The position numbers were made by a program, and so were the translations under genes. Under the pieces are notes generated by a model, which searched no databases, was not told the origin of the DNA, and worked only from the letters and a program-made list of their open reading frames with translations. A DNA stretch of 64,000 nucleotides from Fimbriosthenelais zetlandica (taxonomy: Eukaryota): contig OZ365110.1 in NCBI GenBank assembly GCA_977030845.1, positions 35,216,001 to 35,280,000 on the forward strand. The letters run 5' to 3'. Numbering within the stretch: position 1 is the first letter of the stretch; each line of letters opens with the position of its first letter. This document shows, in pieces, positions 769 to 61,575 of the stretch.

Positions 769-848
769 CTGAATTGTGCGTCGGTACCTTGTAACTTGTA
801 AGCTAGGGCAATGCAGAGCACTAAAAGAACCAAAGTTGAGTTTTCCAT
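769..848 (-). CDS. AKH/GnRH-like precursor gene D, coding exon 1: signal peptide plus first residues of peptide 1 (MENSTLVLLVLCIALAYKLQGTDA|QF-)
   Basis: ATG at 848-846, hydrophobic signal-like stretch ending T-D-A before Gln. Donor AG|GTGGGA at 769/768. Upstream acceptor ttttattatttAG at 872-871. Confidence 0.85.
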
Positions 849-3175: not shown

Positions 3176-3632
3176 TCTATTTCTAATCACACCCAATGTA
3201 ATTTTGTCAGTGGTTAGTTAACCTTAGCTAGGTGTAAAGACTGTTAACATTACAAGCATTAGGTGTAACTGGAAATAGTATTACAATGATCGTTTGGAGA
3301 ATGTGCCCCAGGCTTAATCAGTTAATGCACAACTCACCATATGCAATCGTCAGCATTTTGGATATGACAAAAATATATATAATGTGTTTATAGAAATCAT
3401 CATGTCTATATAATTATCCATTAATTAACCGAAATAGAACTTAATTCTTGCCAAAACCTTATCAGATTCACAGCGCGGCTGTGTGGGATTCGGTATACAT
3501 GTATATTAAATAAGACTACGCTCAAATATCATGCTAGAGCAATATTACATTGGTTGCAAAAACTTTTCTTATGGAGGAATTGCCTTATTACTTACAGTGT
3601 GAAGGAGTCTAAATCTCCCTTTCTATTGCATC

Positions 3633-3854
3633 ATGAACAAGCTCTTCGTTTTCCTGCTTTTGGCCGCACTAATGGTCATCCACTGTAGCGCCAACCAATT
3701 CAGCTTCTCTCTACCCGGTAGCTGGGGTCAAACAGGCAAAAGGTCATTCAGCTTCGCCCTTCCTGGCAAGTGGGGAAATGTGAAGAGAGGAGGAAAGTTT
3801 GACTGCAGCGATCTCAATGAAGAAACGGTTCTGGCAATTTACAAATCTATCCAT
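3633..3854 (+). CDS. Akh: AKH/GnRH-like precursor gene A, coding exon 1: signal peptide, (N)QFSFSLPGSWGQT-GKR, SFSFALPGKWGNV-KR, start of Cys-containing associated peptide
   Basis: Signal peptide, Gln-initiated FSFSLPGxWG peptide with a GKR amidation/cleavage site, a second copy ending in KR, and donor CAT|GTAAGT after 3854 (74 codons, phase 0). Confidence 0.92.
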
Positions 3855-4117: not shown

Positions 4118-4189
4118 GAGGAAACAGCTCGTCTCAACTTCTGCTTCAATGAGGCAATGAAACTGGGGGAATCTACCAGCAAGCAATAA
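4118..4189 (+). CDS. Akh: Gene A coding exon 2: EETARLNFCFNEAMKLGESTSKQ*
   Basis: Acceptor ttctcgttccAG at 4116-4117. Phase-0 frame contains the ExxRLxxC motif typical of AKH/GnRH-associated peptides. Stop TAA at 4187-4189. Confidence 0.9.
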   Translation, partial: EETARLNFCFNEAMKLGESTSKQ

Positions 4190-4833: not shown

Positions 4834-4908
4834 TATAAAAGGAGACTTGTGCTTGAGTTTAGAATCAATGAAGTGAGAGGTATATAACCAAGAACAAGCA
4901 AGTACAAG
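4834..4908 (+). promoter_or_regulatory. Candidate core promoter and non-coding first exon of gene B
   Basis: TATAAAAG at 4834-4841 and a weak donor AAG|GTATAC after 4908. The acceptor before ATG 5219 is not resolved. Confidence 0.4.
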
Positions 4909-5218
4909 GTATACATAGGCCTACATAAAATTTACATTCAAGGATTTTCTTCATTGGATTTCAATATCTAATTTCCTTAGGAGAATATAGGGTATAATAT
5001 ACATAATTGTCCCCTTTGTGAAGTACCCAGAAGCATGTTTCTGCATTAACAGCATTAAGTGCATTATGCACGAAACATCCTTATGCATACTATACATTAA
5101 GATCTACATGAAGGGTGTAAAAGTGATTTACAGTGGATTTGCCCCTATCACATCCAAATAATGTAATAAAATTTGCTTTTCTGGTAAGGACAGGATATAA
5201 AACAACACAATAATCGCC

Positions 5219-5404
5219 ATGAAGAATATATTCCTCTTCTTAGCAGTTATTGCCTTAGGGTTGACAACTTATGGACATCGCATCAAGTTTAAAAAGGATA
5301 GGTCCATTCTACCAGATACAGGGAAAAGTTATGAGAAAAAGTCTCATGGTCAGTGCTCAGATATTGACAGGAAAATAGTTATAGACCTTTATCTGACACT
5401 TCAG
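5219..5404 (+). CDS. Divergent AKH/GnRH-like precursor paralogue B, coding exon 1: MKNIFLFLAVIALGLTTYG|HRIKFKKDRSILPDTGKSYEKKSHGQCSDIDRKIVIDLYLTLQ
   Basis: Signal peptide. CSDID...LYLTLQ aligns with CSDLN...IYKSIH (A) and CNDLD...IYKTIQ (C). Donor CAG|GTGAGT after 5404, phase 0, at the same position as in A and C. Confidence 0.85.
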
Positions 5405-5619
5405 GTGAGTAAATTAATAAGTTGAATAATGATTAAATTGATTTGATTGGCTACATTATTTGATATACAATCGTATAATGTTTATGTATATGGATTAAGT
5501 ACAATTTCTGAAATAATGATATTACAGTGCATTATTATTGAGAATTAACCCTGAGTTGGGACAGCAGAACAAAAAGTTCACTTTTATCTATCAATTATGA
5601 TTTGTTTTGCACATCACAG

Positions 5620-5694
5620 CAAGAAGCCTGGAGGATTCAAAATTGCATGATGGATGTAACTAACTACGTGCACGAGGAAGCAGGACGTGCTTAG
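5620..5694 (+). CDS. Gene B coding exon 2: QEAWRIQNCMMDVTNYVHEEAGRA*
   Basis: Acceptor ttttgcacatcacAG at 5618-5619. QEAWRIQNC aligns with QEAVRIVSC (C) and EETARLNFC (A). Stop TAG at 5692-5694. Confidence 0.85.
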   Translation, partial: QEAWRIQNCMMDVTNYVHEEAGRA

Positions 5695-5770: not shown

Positions 5771-5776
5771 AATAAA
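5771..5776 (+). terminator. Candidate polyadenylation signal of gene B
   Basis: AATAAA about 77 nt after the stop. Motif match only. Confidence 0.35.
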
Positions 5777-7054: not shown

Positions 7055-7372
7055 GGGCTTGTTTCAGCGGAAAAGAAATCCTATTTACTTAGCATTGCTA
7101 ATGGTTGTATAATAGTTTAAGGGTTCGACTTACTTCGTGGGTAATCTGTGAGAGGGAGTCGAGAGAATGGTACACACAGTCCAGTTCGTCCTTTGGAATC
7201 CTTGAGGGGAGCTGGGAGGGGTGTGTACATGCAAGTTTACATTCGAACGTCGACTGGTGACCTATTGTCAAACATAGGCTCATCAGGGAATCTCCCGGTC
7301 GGCCTGGGTTCCAATGACGTCACAGGGGAACCCCAGGTCAGCCGCCTATCACAGTTGTTCTGAAACAGGTCC
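7055..7372. mobile_element. MITE family 1 copy split by a 245-bp insertion
   Basis: CAG-GGGCTTGTTTCA...gttgt [7109-7353] gttgt-tc-TGAAACAGGTCC-CTG. Removing the insert and one GTTGT restores a 68-bp element. Confidence 0.65.
7109..7353. mobile_element. Unclassified 245-bp insertion flanked by a GTTGT direct repeat
   Basis: GTTGT at 7104-7108 and 7354-7358 flank GC-richer sequence that interrupts an otherwise intact MITE. Confidence 0.5.
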
Positions 7373-7467: not shown

Positions 7468-7683
7468 ATGAATAAGGCCCTTATTATCTTGGTGGCTGCC
7501 GCCGTGCTTGCATTCCAATGCTCTCAGGCTCAGTTCTCCTTCTCCTTGCCTGGAAACTGGGGTAATGGTAAACGCGCCTTTAACTTCGCTCTGCCTGGCA
7601 GATGGGGAAATGTGAAGAGGAACAGTGTCAAGTGTAATGACCTAGACCGGGATACAGTAATGAACATCTATAAAACTATTCAG
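7468..7683 (+). CDS. Akh: AKH/GnRH-like precursor gene C, coding exon 1: signal peptide, QFSFSLPGNWGN-GKR, AFNFALPGRWGNV-KR, start of associated peptide
   Basis: Signal peptide ending S-Q-A directly before Gln, GKR site, second copy ending in KR, and donor CAG|GTATGT after 7683 (72 codons, phase 0). From memory, the predicted pQFSFSLPGNWGN-amide differs by one residue from the annelid pQFSFSLPGKWGN-amide (not database-checked). Confidence 0.93.
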
Positions 7684-7939
7684 GTATGTGTCTCCATAAT
7701 TATGTCCAGCCTATTTGACAAAAAAGAAATTCACAAATTATAATTTTCAGTTGCCTGTTTCAAAACCATAGGCTAAAGCTTTGTTATGAAACAACCCCCA
7801 GCCTATCATATCTTACTATATATACGATAAGTGCAAGGGATAGCCATTACTTAATAGGTCTAGGCCTACTTGACTCCATAAGGGAGAGTCCGCGACAAAA
7901 TATCATAACTAACATCATACATGGTCATCGATTTTTCAG

Positions 7940-8011
7940 CAAGAGGCAGTCCGGATTGTAAGCTGTTTCGGTGAGGCAGAATCGCAAGATGTGGAAAAGG
8001 ACAAACATTGA
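7940..8011 (+). CDS. Akh: Gene C coding exon 2: QEAVRIVSCFGEAESQDVEKDKH*
   Basis: Acceptor atttttcAG at 7938-7939. Gives the same C-x24-C spacing as A and B. Stop TGA at 8009-8011. Confidence 0.9.
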   Translation, partial: QEAVRIVSCFGEAESQDVEKDKH

Positions 8012-55000: not shown

Positions 55001-56934
55001 CTCGGCTGAAAATGAATCCGGGCTGAATTATGTTGCATGCCTGTCATATTTACCCGGCTATAATTGAGGGTGGGAGGCGCTATGGACCGAAAATCCAGGT
55101 GAATGGAGCTGGGATCGATGCAAGTGCTGCGACTATTTAGCACACCCCGATGGCGCTGGAGATGTTAAACACCTTAATTTTGTCCCTCTGCTTGAGTCAA
55201 CCATGCCAGCCTTTCACTGCCGTGGAAAGGTAACATTAAATGCATATATAAAGATGTGGTAGCGTAGGGGAATTGAATAGAAAGCCAGGGTTAGCCCTGT
55301 ATACAGCTCAGGCAGTGTTAGCATTTGCCGAGGTGAGCTCGATTCCTTTACCCGACCCCAGATCGTTGTATACGGTTCGTGTAGAGCATTGAAGCGGGTT
55401 CCCTCTTTTACTGATAACATCAGTACCGACAAAATGGGGAGTGAGCTGGGGACCACCTAGACGCTCATATTCAAGTCAGCGTTAGACATTTCACAACAAA
55501 TTACTCAGCCCTCTGTGTGAAAATTTGCCTGTCATTTGAAATAAAAACCCCATGGTAAAGTATAAGCCATATTTATGGGGTGAACAAGTATAAACGATGC
55601 GTTTAGAGTATAGGTTCCCTCTCAACTAAACCTAAGCCGATTTTGGAGGCATCTATATATGATAATTTTCTCGACTCTACAACCACAAAGAGTCTATCAA
55701 AACATAAAGATATGACCACACAAATGGTAAAAACACAGCCGATTACTGGATTCTGCGATATAGTAATGAATTACAATTGGGATAAAAGGCCTTTGGCTTT
55801 GGGATGCCTTTAACTACAATTTGGATCTGACGAGATAAAAAGTGGTGCTCTCCAATGTGACTCTAAACTCGTTGCTCTAAATGCAGATGCACCACGACCA
55901 CCCTGCTTCATATCTATCTACAATATTAATTGTGTATACTTCTGTGGCAACATTGTGATAAAATCACGGAAGAACGTGAAAAATGTCATTGAAAATACAG
56001 TGGTGTCTAATGGGGATAGATGGGAGTTTTATCAGATTCGTCCCATGCAAAGTAAAACTTTAAGAAGGGAATCTAGTTCCTTCTTGTGTTCTTTTAATTC
56101 ATAAAATGATCAAACATTTCCAGCCATGCTTGTAAGCAAGGTATATATAGGGACAGGGATGCAATCACCTTTTACAGGATAAATTGCTTGAATTTTCAGC
56201 GTTGGTCTTTAAGATTGCCATGCCCTCCTCATCCAAGGTGAAACTGAGCATTCGGCAGTATCCGTTTGATTCCAACGTTCTATAGAATCCCGGATTCTTA
56301 GAAGTGATAACCTAACGTTCAGTGCTTCATAAGCTATAGGATTTGGTCACGGGGCGTTTACTGTCATGATGACCATGCATGTATGATGTCTTATGACGAT
56401 TCAGGGATCTGTTCTCAGAAGTCAAGTCTTACGAGTCATTGTAAGGAAAACAATCTTAGTATCCAAAGACATAGATCTAGGTCTATTATACTTGGCAGAT
56501 CTGGGATTTCAAGTCATCCAATAAAGCTTGATTTCAGTTTAATTGGAGCAGCACGAAAAGTTCTTTCAATATAATATCTTTAGTATATCTAATTGTCAAT
56601 CAATATATGAGGTGCATACTCTAAAATGAATTTCGATTGGGGTGTGAACATAGTGCAAGTGCGTGAAGTTCAAATTTACCTTAGAATCTACATCCAATCA
56701 CACAATAATAATTATGAAGAATGTATCCAGCACTATGGCACTACAGATATAAATCTGATGTTCCCGGTCTTGCTCCAAGATATTTTGCCTATTCATTCTG
56801 TGCTTTCAATAACATTGAAAAATACTCTTAGAATAATTATTTTAGTTTGACTTCTAAATTACATGCCTATAAATTGTGTTAAGAATTATTTACACACAAG
56901 TGTAGATAAGATATGTGAAGCTTTCCATACATAC

Positions 56935-57487
56935 CTGGAAATCGTCCATGACTAAAGTAGCCCCCGTGTCTGGACATTAACCATGGGTAGAGACTAAAAT
57001 GTTCCCTGTGACCAGTAGCTGCCCCTAACAACATAGGATGAGCGGCGCCCAGTCCGGGATGGCCGGGAGTGAATCCGGCGGGAAGTCCATGAGGACTAGC
57101 CGCCATGGGTATTGGGAAACCTAGCGCCGCGGCGGCCGTCAAACTGTCAGGATACGCGGTATGTTCACTAGGCCCACAGTTGTACAAACCTTTCATACTG
57201 TTCAATAATAAAGGATTGTTATGGAGAGGATGGAAGCCGGTATTGTGAGGGTGGCCGAAAAGCACTCCTTCCCGGTTGGGCACTGTAGCAGCCTCGGCTG
57301 AAGCGGTGAGGTTGATCGGCGTGGTCGAGGAGTTACTCCTGGGGCTCGGGTCTGGGGAGGAGGTGGAGGGCGGGCGTAAGCGGGACGCTGGTGGAGAGCG
57401 AGACCGGGAACGCGGTCGGTCCTTCGACATGAGCGAGTCAATGGTAAATCCATGGGAGCGTTTGGCAGTCGGCACCACCGGCATCAT
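56935..57487 (-). CDS. Emx: Emx homeobox gene, coding exon 1 (eh1 motif FTIDSLM; YPW hexapeptide-like motif; ends ...GRFP-G)
   Basis: accATGATG start. MMPVVPTAKRSHGFTIDSLMSKD resembles the Emx N-terminus (KRxFTIESL). LYPWL...RFPG precedes donor CAG|GTATGT at 56935/56934 (phase 1, compatible with exon 2). The joined CDS is 1236 nt, 411 aa. Confidence 0.93.
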
Positions 57488-58553
57488 GGTAGAGGCTGCT
57501 AGCTTGACTTCCAAGACAATTGGGAGACGCTCCTGTGTGAAGCGCAGATGAGTTCTTATAAGGAGTAGCTCAAGTTTTGTCCAGAGCAGCTCCTTAAAGG
57601 TCCATGCAGTCTATCAAAGCAATCCCTGAACAAATAACAAGTCACTGCTCAATGCACAGTGCACTATATTTATTCTTCATATCGTGTTTTAAATGAATCA
57701 ATAATTGATAATCAGCTCCAACACAAATCATCCCTCATAAAATGCACATTTAATTATATCGCTAGTATGAGTCATTTAAGTTAAAACACCACAAGGTATA
57801 GGTCAATGAAACTGCTGGTGCCACTTATTGTCCTCGAGTGAATTGAGTAAAAGTTTTATCAAGTGTCCATTGATAATTTATACCTTTGAAATGCTATACA
57901 GCAAGTGTATTTGTGCAGTCCAAAGTTGAAGAGGAATCCTTTATAGTTTATCCACTAATGGTACCTTTAAATCCGTGAGGGTAGAAAGTCTTGGAGAGAC
58001 TTATGTATAGCAGTGATAAAGGTGGAACTTTTGTCAGTCTATGTAGAATGTGGATATGTCACTCCAGTGTCTCAGTGCATCCTCTCTACCACATTTTAGG
58101 TCATGTGAGGGTATGTAGCGATGTCTGAACCTCCTGGGGATCAGATCTGCAGCATGATACACTATCTAGTTATTATATAGCTCAGGGCATCCAAGCTTGA
58201 TATGAATGTGTTGCTGGTGCTCTCAGAGAGTGTGTGTGAGTGAATATGCGTGTGTGACAACGCAGCTCGCGTCTTTCCAACAACTGGTGTCAGTCACTGT
58301 TCACTGCTGTGGCCTATTCCTCCACGCTTCTCTACACTGCCACTATAGTCTCTCCGCTCTCTCTCCCCTCTCTCTCCCTTCTATGCATCCACCTCTCATC
58401 ACACACTCATAAAGTCTGTATGCTTCACCCAAGTGGCCTCTGTCCAAACCAACTCCTTTCAGACTGAAAATACCTGGATCCTTCTGCTTCTGCAGGAGTG
58501 ACGCTCTCTCGGTTTAAGACTCAGAGATCAGCCCTGTTTGGGATCCAGATTCA

Positions 58554-58683: not shown

Positions 58684-61575
58684 ACGCGAACTCATATGGA
58701 ACTCTTTCCAATGTTGCGACCGCAATTTGTTAAGTTATTTGGCTGACAGGGAGAACATCAAATTGTGAGTGATGCCATGCCAATTATCAGGTTCCAGAGA
58801 CTGTGTCCACATAAATAGGCAATCTCGTTTAATATCAGAGTTGCAAACCAGAAAATGATTTTCCATTGACTGAACCAGGGGATGATCTTAATATAATTGC
58901 AGCATTCGACGAGTAGTGAGAATTAAAGAATGTATATACTTTTGTTGTAATTCTAGAAACTAGTGAAAATTTCAATAATCTTTGCCAATTTTTGGACGTG
59001 GTCTTGCATAAAGTTAGATTAAATATTGTGACTATTAAACGCACCATAATTGATCTGTAGTAGATCTCTATACAATTAAAGAAGATAGCTCATATTTTAT
59101 AACTTTTAACATTAGTCATGCATAATGTAGAACAAGTCATTACACTAAGACAGGGGTCCCAATATTCATAAAGAATATTTTCTATGCTTCACATATTTAC
59201 TTAATAAAATTCAGATGTCTGGCGAATCAGTTAAAAGACCTGTCATAGAAATGATAGTCAATAAATAAAAGGCATTCTGAATTCATTTCGTCTGTATAGC
59301 GAGTGGTGCCAATTTGACTGACGTCTGCTTTCTGAGTGCGTACCCAACCATGCATGCCAACTAAAACAAGATGTGAGTAGTACATACAAATGGCACAACT
59401 AATGAGGTTCATTGACCTAATTTAAGAGGAGGGGTTTGATACTTCTACAGTGAGAAGATCTATACGTTTAGTTGGTCCACATGTAGCTATTTAGACATGT
59501 ATATATGGGTCTATAGGATGTCCCATGCATTGAGACCAAAGGACGATATCAATGCATATTAATTTTGTGGAAGAAAGAGACTGAGGTCATTGAAGTATAT
59601 CTTCTTCCACAAATTTCTGCAACTGCATTAGACAGTTTATGTAGATATCTATTTATTAATAGCAATGTCATAAGAAACCTTGAAATAATATTGAATAATG
59701 ACTAAACCAAAGTAATGAAAAGTGAAGTAAGAAACACTAATTCAAGTCATGGAATATTATGTGAAAAGCATATCTATCAGAATCAGTGAGGCATATCGAG
59801 CATGTCACGACCCTGATGGAGGAGTGGCATGTACATGCTAGTATGTCCCTGTATACCACTACAGCCAGCCTCCTCCTGTCCCTCCCCCTGTCCTGCTCCT
59901 GTCTGTCCATGTTGGCATAGAATGAAGTCCGCTGATTGCCACCGGACACACCATAAAGAGACCGCCACTTAGCGACGATCGAAGACATGCGCCCGCGCGG
60001 TCTAGAGTTTCGCATCTTTGTCGTCTGCACCGTCCAAATATTAGCCAAGCAATTTGTCGTGCGCGACAAGCCATCATTGCCTCTTTAACTCACTTAATAT
60101 TTCTCCATCGCCTCATTGAAAGCAAAACAGACATGATACCGAACCAATTAGGCCTCATCTGGAAAATACACAACAAAGGAGCGCGCTCATCCGGTCTGGA
60201 GATGATGGCGTGTTTAGCTTACATGCGTTTCGCCGCGTTTTCGCGGCCCCTGTCGCCTGCTTTGTCCACTAGGCGCTGGTGTATTGTGATCATGGCCTTG
60301 CTGGGAATCACCCAGCAAGAGAGGGAAAAGCGTGTAAACTGTTGGCCTTGCCATACCATACAAACGCTCCTACTTCCCTCCGCCCCTCTACCACTAGCAT
60401 ATTCAGGAACCTGTCGCCCTTTTCATTGCATCGTGTTTGTTTTCTTCTGGCTTTTTGTAGCCAATATATGGCTAAACATGCGCACCTCCTCGTGGTGCAT
60501 CAATGCAGGCCAGAGGCGGGGATTCATCTGCATGAGACCATGTAAAACTATCCGGCTTGTCCGACACAGCCTCGATTACTCGACAAATATGCACACCCGC
60601 CACTATTGGTGTTTTGGAAAGCCAACATCTGTCAAACGGGCCCTGGTACTTGTCCCCACAGAGCGACTTTAGTCGAGAAAACCCCTCTCCAACGCCCCAC
60701 TGTCATAGACCTGTGAAGTACCTCCCTGTCTAACGTAAAACATGTCTGAATTAATTCAGTTCCCCACACTAAAAAGTCCCTTATAAGATCGTCAATAGTG
60801 GTGTCCTCACAGCAATGTATTCAAAACGATCTGGGTGGTACGGATACAAATTTGTGTGGATATGATAAAGTATTCACGGCAACACCCATGATATAAGCAA
60901 ATATTATGATTAATTCAATATAATGTATATTGATCCAATGTTTCAAATGAAATATTGATAAGACACCAAACCATCAGAAGGCTAATCCATCTCATTTGTC
61001 GTTCATAGTGACAACTTTGACGTTTTCCCTATCTTTGTCTCGCAACCATTACCATCCATATACCTCGATCGGTTCATTAAAGATTAATATGATATTGGGA
61101 AAAAGGCGATCAATCAAACGCTAAACTTATGAAATATCGCCCCAGGCTCCTTACATAGAATTCTGCTTGAACATTTTTGCAGGAAGAATGGCGCCAACTT
61201 TTCTATTTCTAATATATGGCTATAGGAGCTCATGAAATATAGAGTGAATGCTTCAATGCTCCTAATATCGCCCGTATACAGACTCACACTATAGTGTGAT
61301 TTATCTCACAGTGTCTTTACAAGTGTCAATAATTGGTGTTGAGAGGTGTTAGAGTTCATGTCTTTAGCCACCACCTGCGAGTAATATCCCTTCCTTCTAC
61401 CCCACAAGATTACAGAAACACATTAAGGTAAAAAGTACTCAAGAAGGAAGAGTACAGTCACTCTATGACAGAGTGGAAACAGCTGATGACACTCATATAC
61501 AAGACATGCAGGTGTCTCTACATGCCTTTGGTAGGCGTCTTGGGAGCAGTGAGGTCTGGGACTGAGTTCTCCTAA

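Follow-up and report, generated by a model that had tools for sequence, protein, structure and literature searches.

The peptide pQFSFSLPGKWGNamide is known from two annelids, Capitella teleta, where it was called GnRH-2, and Platynereis dumerilii, where it was called proto-AKH-1 (PMC5024129). The Platynereis peptide has been renamed GnRHL3, and a corazonin-type receptor is activated by it only at high concentration (PMC6969523). In insects, the associated peptide APRP has been described as "functionally orphan" (PMC8733639; likewise PMC7940354), and the C-terminal parts of the annelid propeptides exhibit no sequence conservation with GAP, the associated peptide of vertebrates (PMC6969523). 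For decades, no function has been assigned to the associated peptides of AKH/GnRH-superfamily precursors. To our knowledge, such associated peptides (APRP, GAP) are co-encoded with a hormone in every known gene, so that selection on the associated peptide is inseparable from that on the hormone. Here we analyse a gene of this family, designated B, within a 64-kb window (the whole stretch of DNA that was analysed). Judged from its sequence, B is probably a maintained, hormone-less secretory gene.

A cluster of annelid GnRHL3/proto-AKH genes

Gene B is located on the plus strand of the window, which is free of N, with two coding exons (5219-5404 and 5620-5694) that yield an open frame of 86 aa after splicing. 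A tblastn search of the window with the B protein returned two weak relatives, at 3759-3854 and 7934-7966, and led to two further genes on the plus strand: paralogue A (97 aa, exons 3633-3854 and 4118-4189) and paralogue C (95 aa, exons 7468-7683 and 7940-8011). B lies between A and C in the identical orientation. A fourth copy, D, has its ATG at 848 on the minus strand and runs off the window. In a related species (ERZ25767047) we found A' (L003, 9340-9561 and 10890-10961) and C' (L001, 10106-10324 and 14233-14307), and another orthologue of C, designated C'', is carried by the Logan contig L002. The introns of A and C are GT-AG introns of phase 0, inserted in the same alignment column as the intron of B; A', C' and C'' agree in phase and column.

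Both A and C bear peptides of the type QFSFSLPGxWG..GKR. In C, a first peptide QFSFSLPGNWGN-GKR is followed by a second, AFNFALPGRWGNV-KR. Against the Pfam family Adipokin_hormo (PF06377, cut-off 22.9 bits), C scores 26.2 bits, above the threshold, and A scores a sub-threshold 15.4 bits; B has no match to this family, even at E<=10. A profile search revealed the same two-peptide precursors in Paralvinella palmiformis and in annelid-like contigs, with homologues carrying QFSFSLPGKWGN-GKR. The PF06377 match of C, the annelid homologues and the published peptide together mark the window as annelid DNA and identify the A/B/C cluster as an annelid GnRHL3/"proto-AKH" cluster.

Several features of the other family members were observed along the way. 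The first peptide of A (3693-3743) is also drifting, and reads ..CSA-N-QFSFSLPGSWGQT-GKR. The first peptide of A' (L003, 9403-9450) exhibits Lys in place of Gln and ends with ..WGSGS-KR, its amidation Gly being gone; the first peptide likewise begins with KFSFA.. in the Logan contigs P0010 and P0012. The second copy, of the form [SAG]F[SN]FALPG[KR]WGNV-KR (3744-3791 in A, 7576-7620 in C), is nearly invariant in A, C, A', C', C'' and P0003, in all of which it permits neither pyroglutamylation nor amidation. The second copy of more distantly related annelids (P0007-P0009), by contrast, has a G-KR end, so that amidation would be expected. Between species, the phase-0 intron of the C orthologues covers a 15-fold range of length: 3908 nt in C' (L001, 10325-14232), 1195 nt in C'' (L002, 2337-3531) and 256 nt in the window (7684-7939). 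The Paralvinella palmiformis gene (L004, 10096-10290) has its first peptide interrupted by an additional intron, which follows ..QFSFSLPG, and gene D (770-848, minus strand) contains a phase-2 intron after ..AQF, a place where A, B and C have none. The window holds just two stop-free stretches of more than 200 codons, at 56882-57610 on the minus strand and at 59926-60669 on the plus strand.

Structure of gene B and its degenerate hormone region

B extends from the ATG at 5219 to the TAG stop at 5692-5694, and its spliced product can be written as MKNIFLFLAVIALGLTTYG / HRIKFKKDRSILPDTGKSYEKK / SHGQC..x24..C..GRA. Residues 1-19 (5219-5275) form a predicted signal peptide, MKNIFLFLAVIALGLTTYG|H, with small residues at positions -1 and -3 of the predicted cleavage site. 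Its hydrophobicity equals that of A and C (best 10-residue Kyte-Doolittle mean 3.38, against 3.24 for A and 3.42 for C), and AlphaFold2 (AF2) models residues 3-17 as a helix. The degenerate hormone region follows as residues 20-41 (5276-5341), composed of HRIKF, KK, DRSILPDTGKSYE and KK, and is recognised as such by the alignments, tblastn, the absence of a hormone-HMM score and a pLDDT below 50. The first part of the associated peptide, residues 42-62 (5342-5404) with Cys46 at 5354-5356, ends at the splice donor (CTTCAG|GTGAGT). A phase-0 intron of 215 nt (5405-5619, GC 0.27) leads to the acceptor (CACAG|C), and the second coding exon (5620-5694) supplies residues 63-86 (QEAWRIQNC..), with Cys71 at 5644-5646, and the stop codon. 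A candidate AATAAA polyadenylation signal is found at 5771-5776, 77 nt 3' of the stop. The original prediction of an open frame, a signal peptide, canonical splice sites and AATAAA is therefore correct in each of these elements, and the string HRIKFKKDRSILPDTGKSYEKK, the C-x24-C spacing and QEAWRIQNC that it had read in B are likewise all present. The exons of B (39.5% GC) retain a contrast in composition with its intron (26.5%), and the GC3 of B (0.41, vs 0.56 in A and 0.52 in C) is near the local background. Exact-product look-ups with the spliced B product and with the ORF of its exon 1 found neither; the control gene C was absent as well, and these blanks carry no information on expression.

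The 5' end of the gene was less well placed in the original prediction. The TATA box that had been taken as the promoter does exist as a motif (TATAAAA, 5196-5202), but it starts only 23 nt before the ATG of B. TATA boxes usually lie about 30 nt from the transcript start, so that a typical transcript from this motif would have its start at the ATG or beyond it, and B has no other in-frame Met until residue 72. On these grounds of spacing we rejected the motif at 5196 as the promoter of B. It is contained in a stretch of the plus strand (5181-5218) that comprises a polypyrimidine-AG acceptor (..TTTGCTTTTCTGGTAAGGACAG|) and, behind it, 24 nt of putative 5' UTR. A better candidate for the TATA box is TCTATAAAAGG at 4834-4841 on the plus strand, about 75 nt upstream of a putative 5' donor, G|GTATACAT (4908|4909), which would close a putative non-coding first exon at 4864-4908, with an approximate start. 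For comparison, A has a TATA-like motif, TCTATATAA, at 3405-3413, 86 nt before its own donor. Polypyrimidine-AG acceptors are found 25-35 nt 5' of the ATG in A, B, C, C' and C'', and donor-like sequences G|GTATAC(A/G)T upstream of the ATG in A (3492), B (4908), C (7375) and C'' (L002:1759). On its plus strand the 64-kb window contains only six copies of GGTATAC; A, B and C each have one of them 93-311 nt 5' of the ATG, and in L002 it lies at -362 from the ATG of C''. These shared acceptors and upstream G|GTATAC donors suggest that the genes throughout the cluster probably possess a non-coding first exon. A perfect cAMP-response element (TGACGTCA, 7315-7322) was also observed 153 nt upstream of the ATG of C, just before its putative first exon; neither A nor B exhibits such an element within 450 nt.

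The hormone region of B gave no reportable score against an HMM constructed from the hormone regions of eight family members. The residue following the predicted signal cleavage site is His20 (HRIKF..) and not a pGlu-forming Gln. Only F24 and L31-P32 align with family residues, FSF and W-G being absent. The positions homologous to the KR sites read KK25-26 and KK40-41, with no Gly before either and no Gly-Lys-Arg. Each feature that the original prediction had reported missing (the Gln start, WG and GKR) was thus tested, and none was found. In the alignments, a gap of 11 residues (about 11 codons) falls within the first peptide copy and leaves HRIKF; KK25-26 then corresponds to the first KR, DRSILPDTGKSYE to xFxFALPGxWGNV and KK40-41 to the second KR, in a stretch so diverged that the alignment is uncertain. 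An ungapped tblastn match, LPDTGKSYEKKSHGQC... (LPDTGKSYEKK..C), links B to the second copy of A. The distance from L-P to the first Cys in B equals that from the L-P of A's second copy, and the LP remnant accordingly belongs to the second, non-amidated copy. The LP described earlier as a remnant of the hormone is therefore real, but it does not come from the canonical hormone, which is mostly deleted. A compensated frameshift was considered as the cause of the hormone loss and rejected, the other frames of 5271-5378 showing no family motif.

Since the pharmacophore is missing, we infer that B would be unable to act on AKH/GnRH/corazonin-type receptors through the usual pGlu...W-amide pharmacophore, and receptor activation by B is predicted to be negative. 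It had further been anticipated that hormone-based searches would miss B. Indeed, Adipokin_hormo of Pfam matches C and not B, and two very large protein searches returned nothing real. B shows that neuropeptide annotation based on hormone motifs and on Pfam misses such genes.

Constraint on the associated peptide and competing readings of gene B

An HMM of the associated peptide was constructed from the eight other members, excluding B. The associated region of B scores 33.4 bits against this profile, whereas the best of 5000 shuffles of the same region reached 14.7 bits. Twenty-four residues lie between Cys46 and Cys71, the spacing found in each of the eight other members, and B carries the family motif [QE]E[AT]xR[IL]xxC. 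The profile score, the C-x24-C spacing and the shared motif agree with the earlier statement that the associated peptide of B aligns with those of A and C. Within the 30-residue core (from the first Cys to four residues beyond the second), B is identical to each of C, C' and C'' at 14 positions, A and C being identical at 15; with A and with A', the core of B has only 8/30 residues in common, which puts it closer to the C lineage (14/30). In a core-only tree, itself unresolved, the branch of B (1.24) is shorter than those of the bona fide A' (2.42) and of the Paralvinella member P0009 (2.27). The whole-protein tree is also unresolved, and places B on a very long branch of 8.5 substitutions. 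Twelve core positions are hydrophobic in at least seven of the eight other members, and B is hydrophobic at all twelve (P of about 9e-5 for random codons). The family-hydrophobic positions are spaced by 3-4 residues, which fits an amphipathic helix.

The pattern of nucleotide substitution points in the same direction. For the three codon positions of the associated region, identity is.51/.58/.40 between B and C and.60/.63/.23 between A and C, highest at the second position and lowest at the third. For several of the conserved residues the codons differ (GAA/GAG, GCC/GCA, AGG/CGG, TGC/TGT), indicating that they have been kept through saturating synonymous change. AF2 was run on a shallow alignment of six sequences, and its models are taken as supporting evidence only. 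It predicts the same architecture for B and C: the signal peptide is helical, the hormone region is disordered (pLDDT <50), and a single long helix continues through the second Cys (residues 51-85 of B, with pLDDT >90; residues 61-92 of C). The suggestion that selection may act on the Cys-containing domain itself is supported by the profile score, the 14/30 core identity, the 12/12 hydrophobic positions, the codon-position pattern and the helix predicted as in C.

Estimates by NG86 gave dS undefined or above 2 in nearly all pairs, including C and its own orthologues, to which its amino-acid identity is 92% (C'') and 82% by BLAST or 76% over the full aligned length (C'). Non-coding DNA gives no alignment whatsoever. 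With dS saturated, dN/dS is not estimable, and other tests of constraint were therefore used. Neutral decay was simulated by replacing sites of C or A with draws from the local non-coding composition. When decay had proceeded to B's identity to C (about 0.46), the frame was open in about 0.4% of trials and both the frame and the ATG were preserved in about 0.04%; even at an identity of 0.70, an open frame with ATG was obtained in about 1%. Over the divergence of B, the probability of an open frame with ATG is 0.0004-0.012, and requiring also a hydrophobic signal core, both Cys and GT/AG gives 1e-3 to 1e-7. The coding frame of B contains no stop codon or frameshift, and neither the ATG nor a splice site has been lost. 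Given this intact frame, the improbability of neutral decay and a substitution pattern that is non-neutral in the associated region, the view that B is not an obvious pseudogene stands, with the hormone region alone looking unconstrained. The constraint so measured is cumulative over the history of B, and present function is not thereby proven.

The best-surviving alternative is that B is dying or recently dead. The gene would have been functional for most of its history, would have lost its hormone, and would now be unexpressed or neutral, its frame being open as too little time has passed. Such a fate would suit a gene in which the hormone, the most conserved part of every other member, is unrecognisable, in which both KR sites are weakened to KK and GC3 is near the background, and which has a very long branch in the whole-protein tree and no orthologue detected at syntenic loci, in proteins or in metagenomes. 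However, the hormone was lost long ago, identity in that region being at a random level at all three codon positions, and yet the frame, the ATG, the signal peptide, the splice sites, both Cys and the 12/12 hydrophobic positions persist. Had constraint ended with the hormone, their joint probability would be the 1e-3 to 1e-7 given above; B has also retained its 5' donor motif and the difference in GC between exons and intron. We consider this reading rather unlikely.

The search for relatives of B bears on the same question. At the syntenic loci no orthologue was detected: there is no B-like exon between A' and C', 8.7 kb apart, in the related species (ERZ25767047), none in L002 over the 2.1 kb that precede C'', and a single gene within 20 kb at the Paralvinella locus. 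A word-index search with the B protein found nothing. An HMMER scan of 1.84 billion representative proteins with B returned three matches, none of them real: two were inspected and proved to be repeat proteins, and the third, of 2,213 aa with 10 matched stretches, looks like another. Two metagenome scans with B were blank, and a search of the ESM-Atlas with exon 1 of B alone returned nothing above noise. As all relatives found lie beyond synonymous saturation, B may be lineage-restricted, lost elsewhere, or too diverged to detect.

Another reading makes B the precursor of new peptides: HRIKF and DRSILPDTGKSYE, or a variant of it, would act on a different receptor, with the associated peptide as a mere folding or sorting scaffold. 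Dibasic pairs do occur at exactly the two positions homologous to the family KR sites, in a region that is strongly basic (the net charge of the N-terminal region is about +5) and for which disorder is predicted, as it is for the hormone regions of A and C, and the frame has remained open there despite random-level divergence. Against this, neither homologous site has a Gly-dibasic amidation signal, and KK, which is cleaved less reliably than KR, is a weak site. Monobasic cleavage usually needs an upstream basic residue at P4, P6 or P8. The G-K of B (residues 35-36) has no basic residue at any of these positions, making a product DRSILPDT(G), or DRSILPDT-amide, unlikely. Moreover, the identity of B and C over the three codon positions of the hormone region is flat (.50/.32/.45), with no sign of constraint relative to the paralogues, no orthologue was found in which the peptide could be seen to be conserved, and no similar peptide family was found in the word-index, HMMER or ESM-Atlas (exon 1) searches. 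New peptides as the selected product of B thus appear improbable. Finally, that B is not a gene but a chance ORF with chance splice-like motifs, as the want of a database homologue with B as query might suggest, is hardly credible in view of 33.4 bits against at most 14.7 in the 5000 shuffles, an intron phase, an intron position and a C-x24-C spacing identical to those of the flanking paralogues, and the mere 0.2-0.3% of trials in which a random 86-codon frame of local composition is open.

Proposed history of gene B and comparison with known systems

We favour, with moderate confidence, the reading of B as a selectively maintained tandem paralogue: a secretory gene, the selected product of which would be the associated peptide and not an AKH/GnRH-type ligand. 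B originated by local duplication, as shown by its place between A and C and by the orientation, the phase-0 intron and the C-x24-C spacing that it has in common with them, and its divergence since then has left no non-coding DNA that can be aligned. The canonical first peptide lost about 11 codons to deletion, giving HRIKF, and the second, non-amidated copy (xFxFALPGxWGNV) drifted to DRSILPDTGKSYE. Constraint was kept on the signal peptide, on both dibasic positions (now KK), on the splice signals and on the amphipathic-helix associated peptide with both Cys. Transcription may start from the TATA box near 4834 and proceed via a short non-coding exon, and the product would enter the secretory pathway. 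Its functional part would be the Cys-containing associated peptide, the equivalent of insect APRP, either freed by KK cleavage or left within a 67-residue basic-tailed protein. Cleavage at both KK sites may release HRIKF and DRSILPDTGKSYE from the N-terminal region, or this region may stay attached.

In the AF2 model, about 25 residues separate Cys46 from Cys71, both of which lie on or beside one straight helix (pLDDT >90), and an intramolecular Cys46-Cys71 bridge is unlikely in this predicted conformation. AKH precursors of locusts dimerise through the Cys of their associated peptides. The distance between the two Cys in the predicted helix, together with the locust precursor dimers, renders a disulfide-linked dimer of B plausible; B would probably form such a helical dimer, possibly mixed with A or C. 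More tentatively, B might be a natural "associated-peptide-only" gene, in which the Cys-containing helical domain would be selectable independently of the hormone. It could serve as a secreted factor, or it could be a disulfide partner that carries no hormone. As such a partner, B would heterodimerise with the prohormone of A or C where the two are made in one cell, and would tune hormone output. This possibility we hold as doubtful.

The family itself and the tandem diversification of such genes are already known, and drift of the first peptide is also found in other annelid copies. In the literature searched, we found no description of a family copy from which the hormone is removed and in which the associated peptide is conserved. 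With its hormone deleted but its Cys, helix pattern, secretion signal and splicing kept, B amounts to a natural dissociation experiment. If B is expressed, a knock-out of B would test the associated peptide alone.

The closest described systems are the annelid preprohormones of GnRHL3, "proto-AKH-1" and Capitella GnRH-2 (PMC5024129, PMC6969523). B resembles them in its signal peptide, two dibasic sites, phase-0 intron, C-x24-C spacing, sequence motif and predicted helix, but differs in having no pGlu-forming Gln, FSF, W-G or Gly-Lys-Arg, in the deletion of about 11 residues of the first copy and in giving no Pfam match. Within the same family, A' of the related species and the KFSFA.. copies P0010 and P0012 also have a first peptide that lacks the Gln needed for pGlu, and A' is missing the Gly for amidation as well. 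From the drift of these predicted peptides it is evident that the canonical hormone has been relaxed more than once in this cluster. These copies nevertheless keep a recognisable FSFALPGxWG in both peptides, whereas B has none.

Vertebrate GAP is, like the conserved part of B, a C-terminal by-product of a GnRH-superfamily precursor, with a debated function. We know of no C-x24-C pair in GAP. Dimerisation is established for the locust precursors and is here only proposed for B. The annelid and insect associated peptides are likened by position, their link in sequence being limited to the Pfam match of C. The conserved part of B is thus the positional equivalent of insect APRP (PMC8733639, PMC7940354), a Cys-containing C-terminal part of an AKH-superfamily precursor with no known receptor; APRP, however, is always co-encoded with a hormone, whereas B would encode the associated peptide only.
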